A DNA stretch of 64,000 nucleotides from Eutreptiella sp. 'Long Island Sound 2002'. Its lineage: Eukaryota; Protista; Euglenida. Below the pieces are notes generated by a model that ran no database searches, was not told the DNA's origin, and was given only the letters and a program-made list of their open reading frames with translations. The translations under genes were made by a program, and so were the position numbers. The stretch is from assembly GCA_964036045.1 (NCBI GenBank), contig OZ038379.1:72664001-72728000 (forward strand), read 5' to 3'. Shown piece by piece: positions 9,900-25,928 of this stretch. Position 1 is the first letter of the stretch, and each line of letters starts with the position of its first letter.

Positions 9900-11360
9900 G
9901 TGGCTCATAGACCGTCCGGTTGCTCAGAGTTGTTTCTTGTTGGGCCGTGTTGTAGTAGGGGAGTCTCACGAGGATTGACTGACAGTTGTAGCAAACCTTG
10001 GTTGCACAAAGTACGTCGGCTTCGAGGTCCACTGGGACGTTCTTTGAGGCGAAGGGTTGTTGACTGGTTGGCGGCGTAGAGGACTCAGAAATTGGACTAA
10101 GGCAGCTGCGCCCAGTACAATTCCGTGGTGCCGCAAAAAAACCCCAAGGGAGGCTTCGGTGTGGTAAAACGGGTCCAGATGATGTCCCGAATATTTGACC
10201 TAGTCAGCAGCTTTTTGTCCCTCCGAGACTTGTTTCGTGAGCCACGCGTAGACACGGTTCTTGTAGGACATTGGAGTACTTGGGCCCGTGCGCTTTCTGC
10301 GTTCTGAGTGGCATTCAGTTTTCAATTGCCTGCGTTGCAGTGGTTCACTTGAGAACTCTGTGATCAATTGGACCTCACGCTGTGCGTACTGCTGAATCTG
10401 CTTGCGGCTTGCTGATTCCATGCGTTGTGTGAGCTGCAAGTACGCCGCAAAGGCATGGGGGAGTGCACTCACGGCAATTGCGTGCCATGCCTCGGTTTGC
10501 TTCATGTGAGTGTGGTGCAACTCAGTTGCTATCCGGCTAATGAGTTCGTCGCGAATAACCGAAGACCGTGCGGTTGCCATTAAGAGCAGGAATTCTTCTT
10601 CAGCGAGTTTTGGGAGCTGAACGGCTGTAGCGGCAAATGTCACGTCGGCTGTAATCGTAGTTCTTTCAGGAAGAGCGTCAACTGCATGCAACTGTTTCCC
10701 GTCTCGGCCGGCGCAGCCATTATAGTCCGTGAGTACCGAGAACCAGCCCAATGAAGACTCAACTTGTGACTCAACGTATTGCGGTTCTTCGTGACGGCTT
10801 GAGGTGACATCCGGAGAGCTGGATGAGGGGCGAAAGACCTGAAAGGCGTCCACAAGATGTGAAGGATGAGGCAACTCTGCGGCGGCAGTAGGCTTATCGT
10901 GGAAACAATCAGCGTCGTAGGGCGCCCATGATCTGTTTCCATTGTGCGAAGACCGCGGTGGCGCTGACAAATCGGCGTTCTGTGGTCGTTCTGGAGGCAC
11001 CAAATGGCTAGTCGTTGAACTCGCTTGCCTGTGTTCCTGTTGCGGCGGGTTGGTGGAGCCACTGCGCTGAGGGGAGAACGTGTGCCTGGGATATTCATAT
11101 TGCGGGGTAGACAAGCCGGTGTAGCTTGGTTGATCTGGCGGGGTCCAAAAGTTGCTCGCTGAAGTCACATGTCTGTGCTCCTGTTGCAGCGGGTTGACAG
11201 AGGCATGGTGCTAAGGAGAGAGAGCGTGTCTGGGATATTCAAAATGCGGGGCAAAGTAGGGGCCTGGCCAATTGGCCTGCGGTTCTGGCCAATTTGACGA
11301 TCGCTGCAGACGGCAGCGTCTTGACTTGCGAAGGGGGCACTGCGAAGAAGGGGGATTTGA
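9900..11360 (-). pseudogene. Decayed ORF inserted in the satellite; possibly gag-like (322-aa open part at 10200-11168)
   Basis: Normal-complexity coding sequence between two blocks of the same satellite. The frame continues past single TAG stops at both ends. It has a Pro/Ser-rich N-terminus with a ~140-bp internal duplication (EYPRH..QQEHR twice), a helical core, and a CYNC motif near 9985 in a shifted frame. Confidence 0.4.
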
Positions 11361-11459
11361 ATGGCTCCAGATCGCTGGGGCGCTTGTATCAGGGCCCGCG
11401 GGGCATCTGCTGTTGATTTAATTCACATACTTGTGGGTGTGCGGGGGACTCGAATGATG

Positions 11460-11900
11460 CTTTGTGTTGCGTGTGTTGGGTTCTGTGTGCGGTGTCCTAT
11501 GCCACCGGGCTCCTTCTCACTGGTCTGCCCGCTCTGTCCGTTGCTTTGGTTGTGCAGTGTCCTGGGCCACTTGGCTCCTGTTCACCGGCGTGCCCGCTCA
11601 GTGTGTTGGGTTGCTTGTGCAGTGTCCTGGGCCACTTGGCTCCTGCTCACCGGTGTGCCCGCTTGGTGTGTTGTGTTGCACGGGCGGTGTCCTGGGCCAC
11701 TTGGCTCCTGTTCACCGGTGTGCTTGTTTGGTGCGTTGTGTTGAGTGTGTGGCGTCTTTGGCCACTTGGCTCCTGTTCACCGGTGTGCACGCTTGGTGTG
11801 TTGTGCTGTCTGTGCGGTGTCCTGGGCCACTTGGCTCCTGTTCACCAGTGTGCTCGCTCGGTGTGTTGTGCTGTGTGTTGCGTGTGCGGTGTTGCGTGTG
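11460..11900. repeat. Second block of the 65-bp satellite
   Basis: Same unit as 3600-9870. Confidence 0.9.
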
Positions 11901-11904
11901 CGGA

Positions 11905-12200
11905 GCGTAGCTGCGGGGCGCGCACCCGTCCATCCAGAAGGCGACTGTTCGTGGCCGGCATGGGCTGGGTACCCTCCGGGCCCGCACTCGTTCATCCAGA
12001 GGGCGGCTGTTACGTTACAGGCAGGAGCTGGGTACGCTGCCGGGCGCGCACTCGTTCATCCGGACGGCGGCTGTTCTTAGCCGGGAGGTGCCTGGTACCC
12101 TCCGGGCGCGCACTCGTTGATCCAAACAGCGGCTGTTCTGTAGCCAGCAGGGGCTGGGTTCGCTTCCCGGCGCGCACACGTCCATCCGGGCGGCGGCTGG
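11905..12200. repeat. ~63-bp minisatellite, ~5 copies
   Basis: GCGCAC(C/T)CGT(C/T)CATCC..GGCGGCTGTTC at ~11920, 11981, 12046, 12109 and 12173. Confidence 0.85.
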
Positions 12201-14564
12201 TGTTGCTTGGCACCTGTTCTTGTGCTGTGGTTCGTTGCGTGTTGTGCGCGCGCTCCGGGTTTGCGTCCATGTGCCTTGGATGTGGCCGGCGGCGTGTCTC
12301 TCTAGTGTGCCTCGTGGCCCGGCGCGGTGCGCGGCGCCTCCTCCGGTTTCGTCGCTCTCGCTGCTCCAGTTGGCTTTCCCGACGCCGTGGTACCTTTCCC
12401 CCCCCAGGAGGCTTGCGCCCCCGGCTTTACTGGGCGGCTGCGCGGGGCACGCAGAGGCCGGTCGAGGACGGGGCTCATTGTGCCTGCCGCTAGCACGCGC
12501 CAAGAAAGGGGCGCTGGGCTGGCTCTGCATTGTACCCATTCGGGGCCCCATGATGGGGTTCTCCCTGGCGAGTCCCTGCAGCGTAGGTCTTGTGCTGCGT
12601 GCGCTGTGGTGGTTGGCGTGAGTGGACCCGGTCACTGTTGCGTCCTTCTTTCCTGCGGTGGGTCGGAGCACGTCACGCCCGAGGCCCGTGCGCGTGTGTG
12701 TGTGCTCGTTCTTCCTCACCAGGTCGGGCGGGCCGGCCTCCCGGGGCGCATTTTGGTGCGCCTCACCTTTCCTCTGGCCGCTTTGTCTTTCTGCTTTGCT
12801 CGTCCCCCTCCGGGTTGGGGTTGCCCCTTTCCTGTTCTCTTTGTTAGTTTTTTTGTCGTTCCCTTTGTGCTCCATGGTTGTCTCTTGCTTTCTCTGAGTT
12901 CCGGCCCCGGGAGCCTTGGGCCTTGGCGCTGTGTGGTCCCCGCCCCCGCTCCCCCCTCGGGGGTTTTTTTTTGTTTTTTTTCTTCTCATTCTTTTTCCTT
13001 TTTTTTTCCTCCTGTCCTTCTTTTCTGCTCCCCCCCCCTTTCTTTCCCAGCCTTTCCCGCCCCCCCCCCCTCCTCTTGTTTGTTTTGTTGGTCTCCTGCT
13101 GCTCGGCTCTCCGTGTGCTCTCGCTGCTTTTGTGTTTCCCGCCTGGCCGCTGGCTGCTCCCTTCTGGTTGCTGCCCCCCGTTCCTTTTGTGTGTCGCGGT
13201 TTCCGTTGCTGCTGCTCGGTGCTCTGTCTTTTTTTACCGCTGCTTTGCTCCTGCCTTCTTGCTTGGCGTTCGTCAGCAGTTCTCGCCTTCTGCTGCCCCC
13301 CTCCCCCCGGTGCGCGCGTGCTGCCTTGTGCTGCCTGTCGTTGCCGCGCTGCGCTGCCCTTCTGTCGGGTGTCCTGCGGTGCCGGTTGCCTTGTATTGTG
13401 CTGCGTGTCCTGCTTTGATGCCTCGCCTTGCTGTATTGCGGGCTGCTGCACGCTGTGCGGTGCTTGTTGGGGGGTGTATTTGTGTGTTGTGCTGTGCTGT
13501 TGGTTGCTGCTGCTTGATGTGCCGTGTCTCTGGTCGTGCCGTCCGCTTCGGTTGTTCGCGGTGTCTTTTGCTGTCTGGTTTTGGTCTGCGTTGCCGTGTG
13601 CTGTGCTGCGCTGTGTGTCCCTGACTGCGGTGCTGCTCCGTGCTGCTGCGCGTAGAGCCGCCCGGTGTTGTGCTGTTGGGTGCTGTGTTGTTTTGTTTCG
13701 GTCGTTTGGTGCTGTTGCTTGTGGTGCTGTGCCCTCTGGCGCTGCCTGCCGCCCTGGGGTCCTGTTCTTTGCGGCGCCGTGTTTTGGAGTGTTCCCCCGC
13801 GCTGTGTGCTCTTTGCTGTGTGTGTTTTGTCGCGGCGTGTTTGTGCATGCTGTTGTTCGCCGCTGTGCTGTGTGCTGTGTATGTCCTGGGGTGCTCTGCT
13901 GTGTGTCCCCTGTCCTCTCTGTCTTGTGCGTTGCTGTGCTGCGCGGTGCTGGTGCGCTTGAGTTGTGCTGTTCCTGTGGTGCGTGCCATTTGCTGGCGCC
14001 TGGTGCTGTGGTACGTTGCTGTGTATTGTGCATTTCCCTTTGGTGTGCTGTGGTGCGATGCTGGGTCTGATGGCCCGTGTTTGTCTTCTGGTGGCGTCTT
14101 TTGGTGTCGGTGTGACTGTCCCGCCGCTGGCCTGCTTCCCTCTGCTTTGTGCAGTTTGCTGTGGTGCCCTGCTTTCCTGTGTTGTGTTCCTTGGTGCTGT
14201 GCTTTCGGGTGGTTCTGTGCTGTTGTGCTCTGCTGTCAATTTGCGGTGCTGTTCCTGCTTGCTTTGCCCTCCTGTGGCCTGTAGTGCGGCGCCATGCTGT
14301 GCTGTGTTGTGCTGCTGGTTGTCTGTGCTGTTTTTTGCCCGTTGGTGGCATCTGTGTGCTGTGGTGCCCCTTTCCTCCCTGCATGCACAAAAAACATTGA
14401 TTATTACCCTGTGTTCCCCTGCGCTGGTCTCTGTGTCGGTGGATCACGTCGTTGATGAAACTGGTCTCGTCGATAGCCGCTCCATTGCTGATCCCGGCGT
14501 CACAGTGCACTTGCTTCACTTGTTTGTACATGTACAGCAACCAGGTCCTCATCGAATTCTTGTT
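12200..14564 (-). repeat. Composite repeat copy E: core, T-rich and TG-rich body; its head lies beyond the LINE at 25929-26200
   Basis: Core homologous to 37-420. Removing the LINE joins 14564 to 25929, which restores the head-body order seen in copies A and G. Confidence 0.65.
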
Positions 14565-15636
14565 GCAGCCCTCTTTGGTTTTTGTTTTGAATTGTACAGC
14601 CACTTTAATGTCCGGACAGGGACACAGCCCTCAATCAGAGTGATGTGTATAGACAAACGTGCTTGGCTCTCCCTAGCACTATGTGAGGGTTCTAGCCATG
14701 GAGGAACCTTGGAACTCGCCCTGATGGGTAGGGTTGTAGAGAACTAGGTTGCCTTGGCACGCGCCCATGTGGGTGCCTGGTTGGTTGCACATAGAACTGG
14801 CGGCTTGACAGAATGAGATCAGGATCAAGGGGAGGGATGGGGGCGCTGTGGTGTGAGACGTGGTGAGACGTGAGACGTGGACGAAATCAGCCGAGGCTTA
14901 CTCATGTGTCGGAAGTACTGAGAAGTGTGCAGGCAGGGGGGGGGGCGGGGGAGGGGATCTGGATGTGGCTCTGAGGACCGAGTGATACCTGTGGTGGCCT
15001 TACCGTAGTAATGGAGCGGTTTCCGCTTCAAAAATTGAACTCACAGGTTAAGGGACTCACAGGTCAACTTCAGCCTTCAAGGGGACTGGGAAGAGGATCT
15101 CAGGGTACTTTATCAATCTGTCAGCATGCAGCGTCAGGGCAAACGCCGTTTGTGAGTTGGCTCGGTGCACTGGAGTGCTGCGTACATTTAGTCCAGGTAC
15201 CACGGGATTTCCGGGGACTGCTCGCGGGGTTCCGGTATCCAGAACCAGCAATAGTAGTATTCAAAACCTTCAGGTTCATACCACCAGTGAATGCCGAGGT
15301 ACCACATGACAGCAATGGATGAGGAAAAAGGCTGTGACTTGGATGATTCACTGGAAGGGGCAGCGGCCTCGCTATTTGGGACGGGGTACACTCTGTGTTT
15401 GGCCGAGAATAAACCGAATGCTGGGGGGGGGTAGGGCAAGCGATGGGGGGGGGTGAAAGAGACTCTGGCGTTGAACTCACTGACGGGGGCGGCTCGGCCG
15501 GAGGCAGTTGGGGGGGCTGAAGCTCAGAAGAAATCTGTGATCCGTCGGTTGGAACTGTCAGCGCCGGGGGGTTGGGGGGGGTGCCACCGGTTCAGGGGCG
15601 TAGGTGTCACTACGCATTTTGCGTGGCCGAGGGTCG

Positions 15637-16978
15637 TCAGTGTCCCGGCTGCGGTTCCTGGGTGGTTGTTTGGGACGCATGGGCAATTTGTTTTTGTGGG
15701 TGGGTGGCCTCTATGAGGGGGGGGGTTGGACTGAGTCTGGCAGGTGGTCTGGAGGCAGGGGATAGTGGTAATCGCTGTGCGCCTGTGGGGTGTGTGATGT
15801 GCTGTAGGTGCTGTGTGGTGTGCCCCAGGTGTTGAGACCTTGGGGGGGGGGCGCGGAAGGGGGGGGGATCTTCGGCTAGCCAAGTGAGTGCTTTGGACAG
15901 AGCGCCTTTCAACTGTCGCTGGCGCTGGGGGAGTGCATTTTTAAAAGGCAAAACGCGCTGGGGTTTCGTTTCGCCTGTGTTGGGTGTAGTCATGGCTTCG
16001 TACAGGGTGGAGGGCACCAAAGATTTGACGAAATTTCGTTTGTCTCCCCGGTGGGAGCACTGGGCCCAGGAGGTGCTTGCTACCTGGTTGAAGGGCGGCG
16101 GCCACGCATGCATGAAGCTTTTCACAATGTGGTCAGCGCTGGGGCAATGGGACAAGAAGGAGGCTGCATCGAGGGTGTGTGACTGTGAGCATTTGTGGCA
16201 AATTCGGGGGGTCCTGTCGTTGTGGAATGCATATATAAGAAAATTCATTTTGCCTGATGACCATTTGAAGGGGAGTCCGGAGAACCACGATGAGTGATTG
16301 TGAAAGAAAAAACTGGACGGCACATGGATGTTGTAGTGGTGATGACGGGGGATGAGGGCCCTCGATACAGAGGTTGTCAGGCGATGACAGACGGGCAAGC
16401 TACCGAAGGATACAGTTCTCAGGGGGGGTGGGGGCAGCAACTCAGGAGAGGATGATGAGCTGTATGCAATCCACTTGGAGAACAGATCCGAACATTCATT
16501 CCCCTGAAATCCTGCATGTCCTTTGATCCATGCAAATTGCGTTGACACAAATGTAGGCATTTGAGCTTGAAGAGAGGAGTAAGCCTTAACCCATGTGCTA
16601 TGCGATGAGCGTGATGCCATTAGGTCTGACTGGTGCAATGTGAATCACTTGTTCGTTATCTCCAAGAATAATGCACTGCATGGGTTGGTTTAGGGAGGAT
16701 ACCCATCGAAGAAACATAATGCCGGCCCAGTACTCAGATCCCTCAGGGGAAAGGTAGGGGGATGGGGGGCACAGAACCAGGATTCTACCGTTGGCTTTGT
16801 AGATGGTGGCAGCAGAGCTGAAACCTCCTTGCCCTGCTGAACCATCCAGGTACAGCCAGGTTGTTTCAGAGGAGGCCTCTTGCAGAAGTTGGGATGCTCT
16901 GTTGCAGTTCCACGCTTTGAGGTCTTCACTTCGTAGGGAGTGGGGGGGTAAACCGTGGACCTGGTACAGGTATCCCAA
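15637..16978 (-). pseudogene. LINE RNase H domain plus downstream Cys/His motif (frameshifted)
   Basis: WLYLDGS, GSEY, ILGDN, then WIKGHAGFQGNECSD (the four RNase HI acidic residues and the His loop), followed by CHKCSQSH..HC. Confidence 0.85.
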
Positions 16979-19134
16979 GGGTGTAGATTTTTTTGGGAAC
17001 CCTGGCGATTGAAGGTTGTGTCGTCCCCTGGGAAGTAAATGGATCCTTGGTCGCAGAAGGTATCAGTCACGATGCCTCTGTGGATGCCAGGGTCTGTGTT
17101 TTGGTGGCGTTGTTTGTTTCCCCACTTAGTAACTCTGTTGTTGCGGTATGTGGTGAAACGAACATAGGCCTGTCCATTTTTTTGGAGCAGGTGTGGTGGG
17201 GTGTTGATTTCAGAATTGGTGGTGTTGAATCTTAATTGGAGACTGTGACAGGCGTCGCTGACCAGCTTAAGGACCATCGAAATTTTCTCGTTGAGTGCTG
17301 CTTGCTGAAAAAGTTGGTTGCTTTCGTCCGGGCCCTCGTTGTTCAAGTAATGGATGTCCGCATTGACAGTAGAGATGTTTAGGCAGTGTTGGAAGTGGCG
17401 CCCGTCAAGTCCCCCATGGGGTCTGGGAGTGTATTTGTCTCTGTTAGACACCAACCTGGAGATGCGGTTGCTTTTCTCTGGATCACGGTCAATGGCAATG
17501 TTTTTCCAAATGATGTTTTGCAGGAAGTGAAGCTGTGATTGTTCCAGTGGGTGTGCCATGAGGCGATATTGGAGAGTGGGGATGAGTTGGAGGTTCACCA
17601 GTCGGATATATTCAGAAAGAGTGATGTTGAGTGGGTGTAAGAAAGTGGAAAAAGACGTGATTTCAGATTTAGCCAGTTCATACGTGATAGTGGGGTCGGG
17701 ATCTGTAAACAGATGGACACCGAGGTGTTTGTATACCTTCTGGGGCGCGAGGGTTTTTGGGTCGATGGTTGACAGCCTTTTTCCAGGGGGCGCTGTGATT
17801 GTGGTTTGAGGGGCCTTTCCCATGCTGTGGAGTTCTGTTTTGCTTACGTTGATGTCTAGGCCCCATGCCCTACCCTTGGAGTTGTAGAAGGATAGGATAT
17901 CTTGTATGCGTTGGGAGGATTCAGAGCGGTACAGCAGGTCATCCACAAATGCATGGCTAGATTCATGTTGTGTGATGGGAGTGGACACGTGGTGAGGGAC
18001 AGCGAATAATAAGACATTCACATACAACACGAACAGAATCTGTGATAAGGGACATCCTTGGCAGACGCCCCTGGTTTGCAGGTGTGATGCACTGGTGTGG
18101 CCGTTAACTACCGGGTAATCTCGTGGAGCTCGGTAGAGCCCTCGGATGAGACGGATGAGGGGGGAGGGGAGGCGGTAGTGTTCCAGGGTCTTAAACAGAG
18201 ACCCGTCAGGGACACTGTTGAAAGCTTTGTTGAAATCTATGTAGAGGCTGTATGAAGCCGGGCAGTTTTGGTATTTGGCTAATAGCTGAAATATGTGATC
18301 TGAGCACCGGCGGTATGGAAGGCCCCCGAGCTGGGCTTTGTGGATCAGGCCATAAAACGAGGAAATTTCGTATAGGTGTTTGGCAGCGTGAGTGGCCAAC
18401 ATTTTATAGAGTGTGTTGAGGAGGGCGATTGGTCTGTAGTTCACCGGGTCGTGTGGTGGGCCTTTTTTGTAAAGCAAGACCACGTTGGCTTCCAACCACT
18501 CATCAGGCATATCGTTGGTAAGGTGAAGGCTGCACACAGAGAGCAGAAATCGTTTCACTGCTTCAGGTGAGATGTGGAAGAGGTAACCATTCGTGGAGTC
18601 TCGGCCACCCGCCTTTGAAGGTTTGCAGGAGTGCAGGTAGGAGGTGAATCTGTGCCATGAGATTTCTGGCGTAGGGGTGATGGCCGTGGTGGGGGGGCAC
18701 TTTGGCGTATGCTGGAGGAGTTCTTCGGCAGTGTGTGCACTGGGCTCGTAGTTTAGAGGACCGCCCAGCGTGAGTAGGGTGTCGGAAAAACATTCGGTGA
18801 GACGTTTAGTGTCACATGTTAGTTTGCCTGTGTTTGGGTCTTTTAACGAGGCTGCTCGATGTTCCGTTGGGTTTGCTGCTTCGTTGAGTGTTTTTTTGAT
18901 GTTTGTTTTTTGGATGAGGCACCTGTGTATTTTTGACTGTTTGGATTTGTTGTAAGTGTCATCCCATTGGTGGATTGCATCGTTCAATTGTGCCATTTGG
19001 GCCGAAAACTGCGGGTGCGTTGGGGGGGGGGCATCATTTAACGCCTGGCGAATGGATTTGACGGCTCGGGAGTCGGATTTGATGCGGGGGGCTGTGGTGT
19101 TGTGGTATTGAGCGCTTAGCTCCCGAATGACCAT
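16690..19134 (-). CDS. Non-LTR reverse transcriptase (814-aa open segment; last ~95 aa out of frame)
   Basis: KAGGRD, WLEANVVLLYKKG, NYRPIALLN, YIDFNKAFNSV, GVCQGCPLS, AFVDDLL, LDINVSKT, YKHLGV, PHGGL. Confidence 0.95.
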   Translation of the reverse strand: MVIRELSAQYHNTTAPRIKSDSRAVKSIRQALNDAPPPTHPQFSAQMAQLNDAIHQWDDTYNKSKQSKIHRCLIQKTNIKKTLNEAANPTEHRAASLKDPNTGKLTCDTKRLTECFSDTLLTLGGPLNYEPSAHTAEELLQHTPKCPPTTAITPTPEISWHRFTSYLHSCKPSKAGGRDSTNGYLFHISPEAVKRFLLSVCSLHLTNDMPDEWLEANVVLLYKKGPPHDPVNYRPIALLNTLYKMLATHAAKHLYEISSFYGLIHKAQLGGLPYRRCSDHIFQLLAKYQNCPASYSLYIDFNKAFNSVPDGSLFKTLEHYRLPSPLIRLIRGLYRAPRDYPVVNGHTSASHLQTRGVCQGCPLSQILFVLYVNVLLFAVPHHVSTPITQHESSHAFVDDLLYRSESSQRIQDILSFYNSKGRAWGLDINVSKTELHSMGKAPQTTITAPPGKRLSTIDPKTLAPQKVYKHLGVHLFTDPDPTITYELAKSEITSFSTFLHPLNITLSEYIRLVNLQLIPTLQYRLMAHPLEQSQLHFLQNIIWKNIAIDRDPEKSNRISRLVSNRDKYTPRPHGGLDGRHFQHCLNISTVNADIHYLNNEGPDESNQLFQQAALNEKISMVLKLVSDACHSLQLRFNTTNSEINTPPHLLQKNGQAYVRFTTYRNNRVTKWGNKQRHQNTDPGIHRGIVTDTFCDQGSIYFPGDDTTFNRQGSQKNLHPWDTCTRSTVYPPTPYEVKTSKRGTATEHPNFCKRPPLKQPGCTWMVQQGKEVSALLPPSTKPTVESWFCAPHPPTFPLRDLSTGPALCFFDGYPP

Positions 19135-19157
19135 GGAGGTGTATTTTTGGACCGTAG

Positions 19158-19497
19158 TGAAGCGGTAGCGGCAGGGCCTCCCTACCGCTACCCGCTGTGG
19201 CTCGCACGTGCGCTGAATAGCGCAATTTATGACGTAAAATGGGATTACGAAGGCTACAGAACAATAGCGAGGATTGCCGTTTTTTATGTTAAAATAGCAG
19301 GTTTTTATAATAAATTTATGCTGTTGTGCCCCATTTTGTAATTATTCGCGAGATTTTACTGTTTTTCTGTGTTTTCACAGGCATCTATGTAGATTTGGAA
19401 GGCCTTAGAACAGTTTAAGCAACTTAATCCGACTCACGAAATGTTTGATTCTTGCAGAAATTGCGGTGCTTTGCAAGGGGTCCACGAAAACGCTTCA
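19158..19497 (+). repeat. 5' LTR (340 bp)
   Basis: Direct repeat of 21019-21371. Confidence 0.92.
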
Positions 19498-19509
19498 AAA
19501 CTGTTCTAA
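19498..19509 (+). promoter_or_regulatory. Putative self-priming primer-binding site
   Basis: AAACTGTTCTAA directly after the 5' LTR is the exact reverse complement of TTAGAACAGTTT at 19405-19416 inside the LTR. There is no TGG-type tRNA PBS. Confidence 0.6.
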
Positions 19510-19828
19510 CAACCCTGAACAGGGACAGCCGCCGGCCGCAGCGCATCGCAGCGCCGAGGAGCCGCGCCAACACGCGCTGAAGCCAGGGGGCGCTGGGCGC
19601 AGCGCCAGTCAGCACCGCAACTTGGCCGTCAGCCGCAGCAAGCAGCCAGAGGAGAGGCAGCAAGTGCCTCCGCAGCGTCCCGGATGAGCAGCAGCTACAG
19701 CAGCGGCGTCAGGACGTGGGGACCGCGAAATGGCGGCTACAACCTGGACAGCATGAGCGACGCGTCAGACTGGAGCCCCAGTCCAAGGCCAAGTTCGAGC
19801 CGCAGTCCCGCGTTCGAGCAACAGAGGT

Positions 19829-20524
19829 ATGGCCCTTCCAGCCGTCAACCCTATGGCCGTGGTAACCAGTACTGCGGCAGCACCGGCCGTCCCAAGAGCG
19901 GCAGTACCAGCCGCAATCCGGATTACCGTGACGGCCACCCAGCCGTCCAACGAGAACTCTTCCGCAAGCCGGACCATCGTCAAGCAGCGTGGGAGCGCCA
20001 ACCAGCAGCCTGGAGAACGCCGGAGCGCCAATCAGCGCTCCACCGAAGACAAGGTCCAAGCCGTGGTCACGCAGACCGTGGTCAAGCGTCGAGGGAGCCC
20101 CAACCTGCGCCCCAGAAAGCGCCAGAGTACCGACCAGTACCCCAACGTGGAGCAGAGTTCACCGGAAATCCACGCAACCCCAGTCCCAGTCTCAGTCCCA
20201 GTCCCAGTCCCAAGCTCGGAGATTGCCATCCTCCCAACCGATACGGTGGAGTTCAAGGCCTGGGCCGCAGAGATGACAGCGTGGGCGAGGAATGCAGCAG
20301 CGGAGATCCGGACCCTGAAGTCGGAGCAGGAGAGTCTGCAAGAGCGAGTGCGCCGCCTGGAGAAGACGTCCAAGACAAAGTCCGCTACAGGCGAAGCGGA
20401 GAAAAGGGTGGAAGTCGTGGAGGACTTCCAGACGCCGAAAAAGACCGCCCCAACCAGCGGAGCGACCAACCAAGACAGTGGGACGCAGACGCCTGGCAGT
20501 GGCAGCCGTCGTTGGAGACGGTAA
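19829..20524 (+). CDS. LTR-element internal ORF (231 aa) with a C-terminal coiled coil; function unknown
   Basis: Heptad-like WAAEMTAWARNAAAEIRTLKSEQESLQERVRRLEK. It overlaps an alternative 282-aa frame (19684-20532), so the true N-terminus is uncertain. Confidence 0.4.
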   Translation: MALPAVNPMAVVTSTAAAPAVPRAAVPAAIRITVTATQPSNENSSASRTIVKQRGSANQQPGERRSANQRSTEDKVQAVVTQTVVKRRGSPNLRPRKRQSTDQYPNVEQSSPEIHATPVPVSVPVPVPSSEIAILPTDTVEFKAWAAEMTAWARNAAAEIRTLKSEQESLQERVRRLEKTSKTKSATGEAEKRVEVVEDFQTPKKTAPTSGATNQDSGTQTPGSGSRRWRR

Positions 20525-20527
20525 TAA

Positions 20528-20828
20528 TTTAAAATTCCGTTTGTTGGAACACCTGTGGGCAAGTCCAGTCTTGTCAGACTTGCCGTGCTGAGAGCCCAGT
20601 CTTGTCAGGCTCCACCAACCAGGTATATATGTGGGTCTTAAAACCCATGTATATATGGGGCAGATCAACCCCTGGCACACGCACCCGCACTTGTACAATA
20701 CAGTGCACGGTGCCTGGGTAAGGCACGAACTGACACAGCAACATGGATTTGATGCTGGATTACAGTACTGTGTGCGTGCCTTTCCTGTTGTTTGGTTTTT
20801 AAAAGCATGGAGGTTTTCGGGAAACTGA
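20528..20828 (+). pseudogene. Possible degenerate small-GTPase-like segment
   Basis: KIPFVGTP-VGKSSLVRL (G1-like, one residue short), then after a frameshift PT-VG..H...INPWHT..VHGAWVRHELT...F...PVV, following the Ran/Rab motif order. Confidence 0.3.
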
Positions 20829-21006
20829 AAATCTCGCCAGGTTTTCAAAACAAACGGGGCAGGCCACCCAAGGCCTTTTTCTTAATCTTTTCCTAGTGAG
20901 GCAAAGCAGGTTTTTGCCTGAGGGTAGTATTGGTGCTCCCCACCGGACACCTAGGAAAAGGCTACCTCTGGGGTTTGTTTTTCCCCTTGGGGGATAAACA
21001 AACCTT

Positions 21007-21018
21007 TAAGTAGGGGGG
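21007..21018 (+). promoter_or_regulatory. Polypurine tract
   Basis: TAAGTAGGGGGG immediately before the 3' LTR. Confidence 0.7.
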
Positions 21019-21371
21019 TGAAGCGCTAGCGGCAGGGTCTCCCTACTGCTACCCACTGTGGCTCGCACGTGCGCTGAATAGCGCAATTTATGACGTAAGA
21101 TGGGATTACGAAGGCTACAGAACAATAGCGAGGATTGCCGTTTTTTATATTAAAATAGCAGTTTTTTATAATAAATTTATGCTGTTGTGCCCCATTTTGT
21201 AATTATTCGCGAGATTTTATTGTTTATCCGTGTTTTCACAGGCATCTATGTAGATTTGGAAGGCCTGTGGCTAACGCCTTAGAACAGTATAAGCAACTTA
21301 AACCGACTCACGAAATGTTCGATTCTTGCAGAAATTGCGGTGCTTTGCAAGGGGTCCACGAAAACGCTTCA
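21019..21371 (+). repeat. 3' LTR (353 bp)
   Basis: Direct repeat of the 5' LTR with scattered substitutions and a 13-nt indel near 21267. Confidence 0.92.
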
Positions 21372-21375
21372 GTAG

Positions 21376-22290
21376 CAAGGCGGGTGTTTTTGATGAGAGG
21401 GGTAAATGATTGGCACCAATCAGACATTTCTTTCAGTGCATCGTTGAACGTGCTGATCTCAGACTTGTTGAGCTTTCTGAAAACACGTTTGGTAATTGTA
21501 GATGAGTGCAGGGGGGGGGGGGGGGCAGAAAGGGGGCACGAGGAGGGATGGTGATCAGTAGCACGGTTCTCTGAGTGAATGCTGGCATCCAAAAGGGACA
21601 TCTTCTCTAGTGAGGCCGGGGAAATGAAAATGTAGTCTAGTCTAGATGAGCTGGTACGGTGTCCTTGTGGATACCTGGTGGACTCGCGTGTTGTAGGGTT
21701 AGCCAGGCGGTAGGTATTGCCTAGTAGGGGTGGGCTGGCCGTGGCTGGGTGTCTGATCCATGGCCAATGATTGTCACTCAGAAGCCCCTGGCTGTCCAAG
21801 GCGGGATGAATCAGACAATTGAAGTCACCCCCCAACAGGAAGCTTGGAAATTGCTTGAGGAGGGGGCGTAAGCTGGTTTCCACTTTCCTTCTCCATACCT
21901 CGCCTGCAGGCGCGTACACAGAAGCGACTAGGAGAGGTGGTGTACCGGGCAGGGTTAGGAGGGCAGCTGTGATGAGTCCATCTTTGTATCGATTATCGCA
22001 AGGGGTGACTGGCTTAGAAGGGGTGAGAAGGCTAAACCGGACCCGTGTTCGTGGTGGCGGGATAAGTTTGAGAAAATCACACCTCTGTGACCTCTTTGGT
22101 TGTAAATGTGGGGCAGGAGGGTTTTCTTTTCGAGTTCTTGAAGGAAAACAATGTCGAAGCCTTGCTTGAAGTGTTGCAAAAGAAGGGGGGTCCAAGGCTT
22201 CTTTTCTGTAACGTGGGTGACGGCACAGATGGTGTGGATTAGGCTTTTTGGTGATGACTTTGCCAGAGCGTAGCCTTTTTTCATTTTGGT
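21376..22290 (-). pseudogene. LINE APE-type endonuclease (one frameshift near 22020)
   Basis: GFDIVFLQE, GSGLAFS, LLVASVYAP, LLGGDFN, SRLDYIF, TDHHP. Confidence 0.92.
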
Positions 22291-22572
22291 TGTCACTTGG
22301 GGGGGGGGAGGGGGTTCTTGGGTTGGAGGGTGGCTCGAGTCAAGAAGTGTTTGAATTATGTGTTGGACGTGCGGCAACCGTCAGGGGGGTGGTGGGTTCA
22401 AGGTCGGTCGCCGTGAGGTGTGTGAGATCTGGGGGTAAGGGAGGAGAAGGGAAAAAAGGCACGGTGTTCATGTGGGATTCCACAAGGGTCGAGGCAGACG
22501 GGGCTGCTATGCCAGCCCCGATGAGCACGTCCTTCAGACTTTTCACCATGGCATTTGCAATGGCGCAATATC

Positions 22573-23997
22573 ATGGCGTATCGGAGAACTCGTTGCGTGT
22601 ATTGGCCATTTCTTTCATCCATGGTAGTTTTTGGGAATTGCATGCAACTATGACCAGCGGGTCTCACCTCGCAAACTTGTAAGCGAGCCGGAGTCCATCC
22701 AGTGGACTTAGGGATGTTCGCCTTTCAAATGGCGAAGGTGCATGGCGACGGGACATCTGAGGTTGAAGTTTAGCACATATTTGCCCAATGCTTCGGCATT
22801 CACATGATCCCCTATGCCTGAACCAGGCTCATAACAGGTGACAGTCACTTGGTTTCGAGCATCGATAGAAATGCCGCGGGAGGACAATTGAAGCAGAATT
22901 ATTTCAATGCAAGGCTCAAACTCGGGTGGTAGGTCTTCCAACCGTGTGATATTGGTGGCATTAGCTCCCATTCCATAGCCAAAGTGCTTCAGATGTCGAT
23001 GCATAGAGGTGTCCCAATTCGGTTGGAGGTGATCAAACATAGTAATGAGGCTGTCTTCTTCCTCAGCAGTGAAGAGTTCTGGAAAGTAGTCGAGGCCGTT
23101 GGGGACTCCGTTAGAGGCGAAATGTGCAGGGGGCATTTTGTAGGGAGCTTCGGGGTTCTCTTCAGGCGGAGGGTCGTGGTCGACTTTGATGGTGTCAATT
23201 TTCTCTGCTTTCTCTTCCGGCGGGGGGTCTTGATCTACATTGATAGCTTCAGAGACGGAGTTCACCTCGGGTGCAGGATCGTTGTCGACTACGATGGTGT
23301 CGGTTTTCTCGGTTTTCTCCTCTGGCGGGGGGTCTTGATCTACATTGATAGCTTCGGCGAAATTGTGATCTTTTTGGGAGTCTGAGATGGCTTTGTTCCC
23401 AATTTCTTTATTCAAGTTTGGGCTGTATGGGTTGTAGGTGTGTGCTTCGAGTATAGGAATGAGGAGTTGTTCGTCATCCGTGTCCCCTTCGGTCTGAGGA
23501 TTCATCTCTGGCGAGGGCGATGGGTGGTTGTTGCTTGGCGGTGACGGACTGAATGTGGTTGGACAGGGAGTGCTTGAGGTTGACTCGGAGTTGTCGGGTG
23601 CCGTAGCTCCTGAAGGAGGAAGGAGGGGTGGTGAACGAGGGGAGGCCATGGAGATGTCAGCGAGTGTTGGTGTCTTAGGCGTGTTGTCTTCCGTGTTCCA
23701 TTTGGATATTTTGTCATGCGGGGTCGGAGGTGGTGCGTCCAGTTTCTCTTGGAGTTCCATGAGTTGGGTGACAAAGGCTCCGGCACCAAGGGTTCCTCCA
23801 CATTGGAAAATGGCGATGAGGTCGTTAGGGTGTTTTTCGTCAGTGTGCGGTTTGAGGATTTTTTCCCGAGAGACATGGTCCGGTTCGAGGCAACGTGCAG
23901 ATATTCCCCGGTAGCTGAAGCCATGTGCCAGTAGAGCCGAGTCCCTCTTTTGATATTTGAGTTGGTATAGAGTGGCAACGTTAGATGACGTGATCAC
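22573..23997 (-). pseudogene. alkB: LINE segment: RRM-like part, Pro/acidic linker and ALKBH8-like AlkB 2OG-Fe(II) dioxygenase domain (22573-23106)
   Basis: GLDYFPELFTAEEEDSL, HLKHFGY, NQVTVTCYEPGSGIGDHVN (HxD read as HxN), then across in-frame stops GSLTSLRGETRWS*LHAIPK, and a frameshifted QRV..IR end. The order and spacing match the ALKBH8 AlkB domain as I recall it. Confidence 0.88.
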
Positions 23998-24001
23998 CTT
24001 G

Positions 24002-25645
24002 TCAATTGAGAGAAAAGGGCCCTAGCAAGCCCATAACAATTTTGACTGAATGAAGAGATTCCGTCATTGGCGCGGCAACTTCAACCAAGCATGGGTCACC
24101 CTGCATGCGGACTGGGTCTCTCGAAAGAGGCCATTTGTCTTGGGGGAGAGCCGTGGATGCAAGGGAGGCTGCTTGAGGTTTTTCATCCCAAAAAAGAGCC
24201 ATGGCGCCCGCCGATCCTTTGAATAACAAGAATCCATCGTCACGGAACAATCTTGTTGCTAGAGTTTGAAGCGGGGTTTTTTGAGGTTCGCATGGCACCG
24301 CCGAGGAGTCTATGGTAACTAGCAGACTCGTTGAGTTTTTGATTAGAGCTCCTTCGTACATGCAGTAGCGTGGGTGGGCCGTCTAATTCCGCCTTGTGAT
24401 GGACCAAATATTGCCCGCTTTGTCGTCGTGGTTGCGAGATTTGCAATCACGAGAGGGTACAACCTTGAATGTTCGTAGGCTTTGGAGATCTTCGATACGC
24501 ATGATGAAAATGTCTCCTTTGGCAAACGCCGGGGAGTTGACCACCGCATTGCGAAGGTAGGTGTCGAAGGGTGGTGGGAGATCCCAATCATACCTCACAA
24601 AACCTTCAAGAGGAGAGCGGAAGTTGCGGATTCCTCCTAGTGGGCACAAAGCATTGGATGAGTTGATGCTAGCCGCGTCACTCAAACCGCCGAAGGCTCG
24701 TTTGAAACCCGTTTGCATGATTCTATTGTCCGTGGGCGAGAAGTCTCCCTGGGTTTTTGGGTTGGGAACTTTGGATTCATCATAGAAAGCGTGTAGGGTC
24801 TTGACGGAAACGTCAATCCGAACCTTGGAGTTGACCGTGTTGGGTGGTTTGTTGATGCGGGCGTGTTGGAAGGCTTTGGAGAGAGATGGTTCGTAGAGGT
24901 TGACATCAAAGACTTGAATTTCATCCGTTCTGCTTTTTTGGCTATCAAGCCATAAGGCCACGACTGGGAGGGATTGACCGTTTGTTTCGACAAAGTTGGG
25001 TGTGTTGTTCCTTACCAAAGCAAATTGGTTTTTGGTCTCCTTGAAAACATGGGTCTCGGCGATGAAATCTTTTATTTGAACGAGGGAACCATTCATTGTG
25101 GGGAGGTAGGACTTGGATGTGACCTCCCTATCGTAGCTCGTAGTAATGAACCATCCACCGGTTGGAGTGCTTGGTGAAGCAAAGCGGCTTTTCAACAATT
25201 CTACGTAGTGTTTGGGAGTTTTCACCATTGGTGGCAACCCCGCTTTGTCCATGAGAGGTGCAAGGTAGAACGCAACCCTAGGCATGTACTCATCTTTGTG
25301 CATGAACAAGTCGTGGGCGGGCGATAGGTAGGTGTGTTGAGTTTGTTTGTTGATGTCTATGTTGATGAAGGCGTTGGTGAAGTCGGTGCCCCTTAGATCT
25401 CGGTCAAACGGATGTCTATTGTAGAGGAATTGGCGTATGTTGGAGTGTGCAATGAGGAGTTTTGAGTCAAACATGCGAGTACCTTCTTCGTAAGTGCCGA
25501 ATTTGACGTAGTCATTTTCCCAGGATGATTTTGGCGTAGCCAAGAGTTGAGCGGGACCATAGGTGAGGCCTTTTGGGATTGGAAAAGGGGAGGGCGGCGG
25601 AATGGTTGGCACTTTGTTTCTTGCACCAAGACCAAAAAACGACAT
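24002..25645 (-). pseudogene. LINE N-terminal (ORF1-like) region, no recognised domain
   Basis: ATG at 25645 (MSFFGLGARNK). ORFs 24383-25903 and 24002-24361 share a frame across one TAA. A 1-nt shift at ~24003 joins the 22708-23997 frame. Confidence 0.7.
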
Positions 25646-25888: not shown

Positions 25889-25914
25889 GGAAAAAATAGA
25901 CACTCAGAAAGTGT
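25889..25914 (-). other. Euglenid spliced-leader relic at the LINE 5' end
   Basis: ACACTTTCTGAGTGTCTATTTTTTCC vs the euglenid SL ACACTTTCTGAGTGTCTATTTTTTTTCG (recalled from memory); the first 24 nt are identical. It is not followed by a GT donor. Confidence 0.9.
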
Positions 25915-25928
25915 GCGGCCCTGTTTGG

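Follow-up and report, generated by a model that had tools for sequence, protein, structure and literature searches.

An AlkB-type dioxygenase domain at the C-terminus of ORF1 in a group of LINEs from the euglenid Eutreptiella

We analyzed a stretch of 64,000 nucleotides from the euglenid Eutreptiella sp. 'Long Island Sound 2002' (GenBank assembly GCA_964036045.1, contig OZ038379.1, positions 72,664,001 to 72,728,000 of the forward strand), called here the window. Its minus strand carries a full-length 9.1-kb long interspersed nuclear element (LINE) of the apurinic/apyrimidinic endonuclease (APE) type, as delimited by alignment to an intact sister copy. The first open reading frame (ORF1) of this element ends in an AlkB-type 2-oxoglutarate (2OG)/Fe(II) dioxygenase domain. 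The window copy, which differs from its relatives by about 5%, is dead, while intact relatives are present elsewhere in the same genome. The AlkB domain goes back to a single gain in the ancestor of a large LINE group and has been under strong purifying selection in every lineage sampled; about the architecture and the selection, taken together, we have hardly any doubt. The AlkB-bearing group is large, old and probably still active.

The AlkB domain in the window and in intact copies

In the window copy, the motifs GLDYFPELFTAEEE, KHFGY, NQVTV..YEPGSGIG.HVN, GSL..LRGE.RW and LHAI all lie in one minus-strand frame, between 23199 and 22545, as seen in the translation of 23199-22250. LHAI, which carries the second His, is found at 22647-22636, and the Rx5R motif at 22583-22563. 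An earlier reading of the window, made from the sequence alone, had placed an AlkB domain at 22573-23106. The domain is real, with its motifs in one frame and intact sisters that pass the Pfam family PF13532. Those coordinates cover the folded domain, whose true C-terminus is the Rx5R motif (22583-22563); the ORF1 stop codon follows at 22544-22542. The sequence-only reading also described the copy as decayed, with HxN in place of the HxD iron motif and two stops, and mapping against an intact copy located each of these defects: a TAA at 22710-22708, a TAG at 22650-22648, and an Asp to Asn change (HVN) at 22800-22798. An apparent third stop is a frameshift product of a 1-nt insertion at 22632. 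Upstream of the AlkB domain, ORF1 contains a further TAG (24385-24383) and a 1-nt insertion at 24016, which brings the whole ORF1 of the window to three stops and two 1-nt insertions.

When the window's own pieces were searched with Pfam for AlkB, nothing was found at E 0.01, and a sub-threshold match appeared only at E 10. The AlkB piece alone scores 17.8 bits on PF13532, where the cut-off is 31.2. Intact copies were therefore needed for the family assignment. Their ORF1s score 40.0, 38.7, 38.9 and 34.6 bits, and the match is always C-terminal. For both families that we followed, family 1 (that of the window copy) and the more distant family 3, the best solved structure in phmmer searches was human ALKBH8 (3THP; E 6e-12 and 3e-12), followed in the ranking by ALKBH6, ALKBH7 and Ofd2 of S. 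pombe. The Pfam and ALKBH8 scores of the intact copies place the similarity to AlkB far beyond chance.

An AlphaFold2 model of the domain, built on a 31-sequence alignment, is a double-stranded beta-helix (jelly-roll) with pLDDT 94 and pTM 0.90. All 50 matches listed by Foldseek against the PDB belong to the AlkB family, with ALKBH6 (7VJS, 2.5e-14) and ALKBH8 (3THT, 8.6e-14) at the top; NMAD-1, which is ALKBH4-like, is also among the matches listed. Most copies retain their iron and 2OG ligands. Family 1 reads HVD...LHAI...R-YAMIL-R, and HVD is kept in 28 of the 29 sampled copies of this family. The family-3 group reads HxE...KHGI...R-ISLIF-R. The Rx5R of the LINE domains aligns with R-VSLTF-R of other AlkB proteins.

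Limits and layout of the element

The element in the window runs from a spliced-leader head through ORF1, its stop, a 258-nt spacer and ORF2, which holds APE, reverse transcriptase (RT) and RNase H-like parts, to an A-rich tail, and it is flanked by target-site duplications. Its parts are given below in window positions, in the 5' to 3' order of the element.

25914-25928, minus strand: 5' target-site duplication of 15 bp; 13 of the 15 positions match 14578-14564
25891-25912, minus strand: 5' end of the element, spliced-leader sequence ACTTTCTGAGTGTCTATTTTTT, first base at 25912; the head is identical in family-1 and family-3 copies
23224-25645, minus strand: N-terminal and middle parts of ORF1 (about 650 conserved amino acids, then a Pro/Ser/Asp-rich linker); ATG at 25645, mapped from intact copies
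22545-23223, minus strand: AlkB-type 2OG/Fe(II) dioxygenase domain at the ORF1 C-terminus, folded part about 23130-22545; decayed in the window copy
22542-22544, minus strand: ORF1 stop codon, mapped from the intact copy C10_25; three intact copies end in ...HCECHG and a stop
21372-22284, minus strand: ORF2 start (ATG 22284-22282) and APE endonuclease domain (Pfam match 21994-21545; Exo_endo_phos 24.8 bits, also Exo_endo_phos_2); collinear with intact copies
19158-21371, no strand assigned: foreign 2.2-kb insertion that splits ORF2 and does not belong to the LINE; two intact copies aligned to the window with blastn skip from 21372 to 19157
16980-19157, minus strand: ORF2 reverse transcriptase region (RVT_1 match 18462-17716, 96.8 bits)
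14593-16979, minus strand: ORF2 C-terminal region and 3' untranslated region, with an RNase H-like stretch at 16575-16477; collinear with intact copies
14579-14592, minus strand: short A-rich 3' tail; intact copies have A10 or an A-rich run right before the duplication
14564-14578, minus strand: 3' target-site duplication, which pairs with 25928-25914

The sequence at the head, ACTTTCTGAGTGTCTATTTTTT, is one that we take to be the euglenid (Euglena) spliced leader (SL). The intact copies C10_25 and C1_5 have duplications of 16 bp and 14 bp at the same element ends as the window copy, so that duplications of 14-16 bp, an SL head and an A tail were seen in three copies. Full-length copies start exactly with the complete SL, either directly after the 5' duplication or after 1-2 extra bases. 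With a complete SL at the start of the copies and a short A-rich tail at their end, the template of the element appears to be a trans-spliced, spliced-leader-capped RNA.

The features of the LINE class are present: APE followed by RT in ORF2, target-site duplications and an A-rich 3' tail, without long terminal repeats (LTRs). RVT_1 (96.8-115 bits) and Exo_endo_phos were detected in the window and in intact copies, and the nearest solved structure to the RT of an intact copy is human L1 ORF2p (E 4e-22). The RNase_H match is weak, scoring 17.8 bits on the decayed copy of the window, under the cut-off of 25.8. Within the foreign insertion that separates the APE and RT domains, open frames occur on the plus strand at 19684-20532.

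The sequence-only reading had located AlkB inside the element, between the SL and the tail, on the strand of the APE and upstream of it. This agrees with the limits given above, as the domain lies inside the target-site duplications, upstream of the APE and on the same strand. That AlkB and APE belong to one element also stood, but their union in a single polyprotein did not. AlkB ends a separate ORF1, the stop of which is conserved in the intact copies of family 1 and is followed by 258 nt before the ORF2 ATG.

Copy number, subfamilies and linkage

The AlkB stretch of the window was searched against the window's own 2.28-Gb genome. This gave 150 scored matches from 1300 first-look candidates. 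When a divergent relative or a euglenid AlkB protein served as the query, the candidates numbered 1488 and 1646, respectively. The number of candidate AlkB copies in the genome is at least 1300-1650. They form a continuum of subfamilies, with amino-acid identities of 76-88%, 51-61% and 32-35% to the window copy, and from 100% via about 60% down to 36% to family 3. Many of the AlkB matches lie in open frames of 930-1290 amino acids. One family-1 copy (C4_156, L031:5486-6118) is inserted in frame behind the unrelated open frame of another element, which produces a misleading frame of 1289 amino acids; open-frame lengths from the genome search can therefore overstate the length of ORF1.

The AlkB domain is contiguous with the inter-ORF and APE sequence in all 30 sampled family-1 loci, and with the upstream ORF1 in 29 of them. 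Seven further full-length loci from other subfamilies are arranged in this way, and the same order of AlkB and APE is seen in C7_71, C9_37, L043, L049 and L050. Six family-3 copies (G000; C7:71854942, C9:37165919, C13:7335984, C19:2167412, C20:10452683 and C23:25320196) show 100% identity along 223 amino acids of their AlkB domains, which lie in open frames of 943-1703 amino acids. This identity points to a family-3 subfamily that was recently active or is so still.

These data bear on the simplest alternative, namely that AlkB is an accidental one-off capture, an adjoining fragment of a host gene or a chance similarity. The window copy taken by itself would fit such a reading, being below the Pfam threshold (17.8 bits) and full of defects. 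However, there are hundreds to thousands of copies, the linkage holds in 30 of 30 loci and the domain lies within the target-site duplications. Lineages that are about 35% identical have it in frame as the last part of ORF1, it forms one clade and its dN/dS is far below 1. We consider this alternative refuted.

Selection, age and origin

Selection was estimated codon by codon between P0002 and P0003, two subfamilies of the family-3 group. For the AlkB domain, the proportion of synonymous differences (pS) is 0.74, which is saturated, the nonsynonymous proportion (pN) is 0.084 and dN/dS is about 0.03. For the N-terminal region of ORF1 the corresponding values are 0.67, 0.127 and about 0.08. The constraint on AlkB is at least that on the rest of ORF1. 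Within family 1, which is young, variant classes were scored against the majority reference of one 225-codon segment, and the dN/dS-like ratio is about 0.25 for variants present in two or more copies and 0.61 for singletons. The variants in two or more copies reflect active master elements, and the singletons are largely post-insertion decay. The sequence-only reading had proposed to examine sister copies for linkage, the Pfam profile, the iron ligands and dN/dS. All four came out in favor of a domain that belongs to the element: AlkB and APE are contiguous in every family-1 locus sampled (30/30), which is not the pattern of a one-off capture, intact copies score above the PF13532 cut-off, most copies have kept the iron and 2OG ligands, and dN/dS is far below 1.

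In a maximum-likelihood tree, the 13 LINE AlkB domains included all fall in one clade (98/91), with a distance of more than 3 substitutions per site between family 1 and family 3. A single LINE clade with so large a distance between its families indicates that AlkB was acquired once, long ago, and has been retained since. An ALKBH8-like eukaryotic clade is separate (99/89). It includes the annotated ALKBH8 of Guillardia theta and a Chlorarachnion protein (P0027) in which AlkB is combined with Methyltransf_11. The LINE clade has as its nearest neighbors in the tree an environmental protein and a transcript protein from another euglenid, Ploeotia vitrea. The best match to the Ploeotia vitrea AlkB protein in the genome (G000:C1:157907622-157908605, plus strand; 38% identity, E 7e-51) is a single locus with a 593-aa open frame, separate from the LINE copies. 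It is probably the host's own AlkB-like gene and a candidate relative of the donor.

The sequence-only reading called the domain ALKBH8-like. This holds for similarity, where ALKBH8 is best, but the LINE domains fall outside the eukaryotic ALKBH8 clade and the methyltransferase domain is absent, and on these two grounds orthology to ALKBH8 was rejected. A joint capture of RRM and AlkB from ALKBH8 was likewise rejected, since an hhalign profile comparison of the RRM-like plus AlkB segment of the LINE with the RRM plus AlkB of ALKBH8 aligned the AlkB part only. As only this part aligns, the term ALKBH8-like is used here for similarity and not for orthology. Distant long proteins with a C-terminal AlkB were also considered, and they are unrelated fusions (with glycosyltransferase 90, isochorismatase, NADAR, TRIP4 or DUF4326), none of them a LINE. 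One of these, of 1227 amino acids, combines a glycosyltransferase family 90 domain with a C-terminal AlkB unrelated to that of the LINE (L045:10001-13684, on a JGI metagenome contig of 56.7 kb). The gene content of that contig is giant-virus-like, with TFIIS, a ResIII helicase, a papain-like protease and a thioredoxin.

Architecture of ORF1

ORF1 of family 1 encodes 1033 amino acids and begins with MSFFGLG, and that of family 3 encodes 857 amino acids and begins with MSFLFGG. The two are about 35% identical and align along their entire length. Both consist of a conserved region of about 650 amino acids, a variable acidic and Pro-rich linker, which is longer in family 1, and the C-terminal AlkB domain. 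The family-3 group has in addition a long ORF of 548-889 amino acids, without a Pfam match, between ORF1-AlkB and APE-RT. It was found at the following loci.

L043:10570-12945: extra ORF of the family-3 group
L049:9801-12470: extra ORF of the family-3 group
L050:9723-11927: extra ORF of the family-3 group
C7_71 11018-12661: extra ORF of the family-3 group

In the three loci with gene calls, this extra ORF overlaps the end of ORF1 by 14 nt.

The N-terminal region of about 650 amino acids, queried with 641 of them, matched no Pfam family and had no Atlas match. Its AlphaFold2 model is of low confidence (pLDDT 55), and a Foldseek search with this model returned none at E < 0.001. Two beta-alpha-beta-beta-alpha-beta segments (residues 273-400 and 521-595 of the family-3 ORF1) align to many RRMs in VIA-align, with middling Z values of 5-5.7 obtained on this low-confidence model. 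These putative RRM-like segments are a weak lead only. Residues 91-261 of a family-3 ORF1 (L033:6018-7940) gave a weak alignment, with Z about 6 on a low-confidence model, to Rossmann-type N6-adenine methyltransferases, including CAPAM. This methyltransferase-like resemblance (Z 5-6) was not trusted, as no (D/N)PPY-type motif is common to both families, and it may be noise. The Pfam scan gave no methyltransferase match in ORF1.

Possible function of the AlkB domain

The explanation that we favor overall, with moderate confidence, is that the ORF1 protein (ORF1p) carries AlkB for demethylation of RNA in cis. ORF1p would coat the element's own RNA and thereby place AlkB in cis on the template. 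The domain, as an active oxygenase, would oxidatively strip base methylation, of the 1-methyladenosine/3-methylcytidine (m1A/m3C) type or of the N6-methyladenosine (m6A) type, that stalls the RT of the element or marks its RNA for host control. Removal of the methyl groups would raise the yield of full-length cDNA. Repair or demethylation as a possible role had already been put forward, as an inference, in the sequence-only reading. The parts of this account differ in firmness. Catalytic activity of the domain is likely, judging from its conserved residues and predicted fold. That the substrate is the element's own RNA we rate a little short of even.

Two points favor an active oxygenase over a dead scaffold: the metal and 2OG ligands are kept across lineages with saturated synonymous sites, and the fold is confidently predicted. 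The ORF1p of other LINEs coats the RNA of the element in cis, and the element's own RNA would thus be the most economical substrate. Reverse transcriptases are blocked by methyl lesions, m1A and m3C among them, and the elements described here were copied through to nucleotide 1 of the SL.

A more specific proposal, which we put forward only tentatively, is that ORF1p would be an RNA chaperone with a built-in, active RNA-modification eraser that works on the SL-capped RNA of the element and is required for efficient full-length retrotransposition. The marks concerned may be internal m1A, m3C or m6A, or methylation near the SL cap. Kinetoplastid-style cap-4 base methylation on the SL was considered as a target and was left with low odds only. 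Cap 4 is documented in kinetoplastids (PMC1636459), and for the Euglena spliced leader the literature consulted gives only a trimethylguanosine cap (PMC3388326).

Several observations weigh against demethylation of the element's RNA by an active domain. In the 2OG-binding NxY motif, the Asn is Ala in all sampled LINE lineages except one, the decayed fragment P0019, which has Val; the Tyr is kept. The Asn is retained in all 17 non-LINE sequences of the alignment, from which the change to Ala is a derived character common to the LINE clade. This change could weaken cofactor binding. For an AlkB protein, the HxE of the family-3 group is unusual. Neither ALKBH8 nor ALKBH6, the closest relatives with a solved structure, is a classical demethylase, and since ALKBH8 hydroxylates the wobble uridine of tRNA, the substrate cannot be read from homology. 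As to expression, the relatives found in protein databases all come from genome assemblies and none from transcriptomes. One RNA run was matched, an estuary metatranscriptome, with contigs over the 5' approximately 560 nt only; the other runs matched are of unknown kind and probably DNA.

The same active-site residues would suit a reading in which the AlkB fold is catalytically dead and is kept as a nucleic-acid-binding or oligomerization module of ORF1p. The Ala of NxY, present in every sampled LINE lineage except P0019, the HxE in place of HxD in one large group and the modest Pfam scores of 35-40 bits all fit it. However, the His, the Asp or Glu, the second His and both 2OG arginines are kept across saturated lineages, which would not be expected under selection for binding only, and the predicted active-site jelly-roll is modeled with high confidence. 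We regard a dead fold as quite improbable.

Another reading is that AlkB acts on host targets. It could modify tRNA wobble uridines in favor of the translation of the element, or act on methylation of host or target-site DNA or RNA, for escape from silencing or preparation of the integration site. The best matches in sequence and structure, ALKBH8 and ALKBH6, are not m1A/m3C repair enzymes, and the presence of the ALKBH4-like NMAD-1 among the fold matches listed is compatible with such targets. Conflicts over methyl marks are plausible in this host, given a preprint which reports that transposable elements of this genome also bear adenine and cytosine DNA methyltransferases and that both 5-methylcytosine (5mC) and N6-methyladenine (6mA) occur in the Euglena epigenome (bioRxiv 10.64898/2026.05.21.726589). 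On the other side, AlkB is fused to ORF1p, which by analogy with other LINEs would bind element RNA in cis. The LINE protein is without the methyltransferase domain of ALKBH8, the profile comparison with ALKBH8 aligned the AlkB part and not the RRM, and the LINE clade is not nested in that of ALKBH8. Action on host targets is in our view unlikely.

The long retention of AlkB suggests that LINE retrotransposition meets a real barrier in this host, formed by methylation of the RNA template or of some other nucleic acid, to which the AlkB-bearing LINE would carry its own answer. If ORF1p is indeed a chaperone with a built-in eraser, the element would be the first known case of a LINE with an enzyme of epitranscriptomic counter-defense. 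As the intact genes are natural, they offer a tractable system for asking which RNA or DNA marks restrict retroelements.

Comparison with known systems

LINE ORF1 proteins are known as RNA-binding chaperones, and the only enzyme described in them so far is a lipid esterase. The types described comprise coiled-coil/RRM/C-terminal domain proteins, CCHC knuckles, PHD and the SGNH esterase of CR1-like elements (PMC4120745, PMC3905857). The ORF1p found here resembles them in being modular and presumably RNA-binding, and the esterase type is a precedent for an enzyme in ORF1p. In contrast, a 2OG/Fe(II) dioxygenase is found in none of the five described types. A full-text literature search found no report of an AlkB-bearing LINE, and the preprint on methyltransferase-bearing transposable elements of Euglena (bioRxiv 10.64898/2026.05.21.726589) does not mention AlkB. 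Retroelements with accessory enzymes of nucleic-acid modification are known, AlkB included, but AlkB in a LINE and fused to ORF1p is not.

Among cellular enzymes, the domain is closest to ALKBH8 (3THP/3THT) and ALKBH6 (7VJS), with which it shares the double-stranded beta-helix, HxD..H and Rx5R (Foldseek 1e-13 to 1e-14, TM-score about 0.78). Unlike ALKBH8, the LINE protein has no methyltransferase and no homologous RRM detected by profile comparison, and its NxY reads AxY.

The AlkB/2-ODD domain of a Ty3/Gypsy element from the orchid Phalaenopsis demethylates m6A in single-stranded RNA in vitro, and its authors propose that it counters methyl-based host control (PMC9289625). Both cases concern a retrotransposon that carries its own AlkB-family dioxygenase. 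However, the orchid element belongs to the LTR retrotransposons, and its AlkB, which is ALKBH5/ALKBH9B-like, is encoded by an extra ORF, was acquired recently and is confined to one plant genus. The AlkB of the LINE is fused to ORF1p, is ALKBH8/6-like by similarity, is old, as its saturated synonymous sites indicate, and is present in more than 1000 candidate copies. Plant RNA viruses (Flexiviridae and relatives) have AlkB in their replicase polyproteins, where it removes m1A and m3C from RNA and presumably cleans the RNA of the virus itself. Like the LINE, they are selfish, RNA-templated replicons with AlkB fused to replication proteins; they differ in using an RNA-dependent RNA polymerase and in an AlkB that is closer to bacterial AlkB. 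Together with the orchid Gypsy element and the plant RNA viruses, the LINEs described here would make a third case in which a selfish element with an RNA template has independently recruited AlkB.

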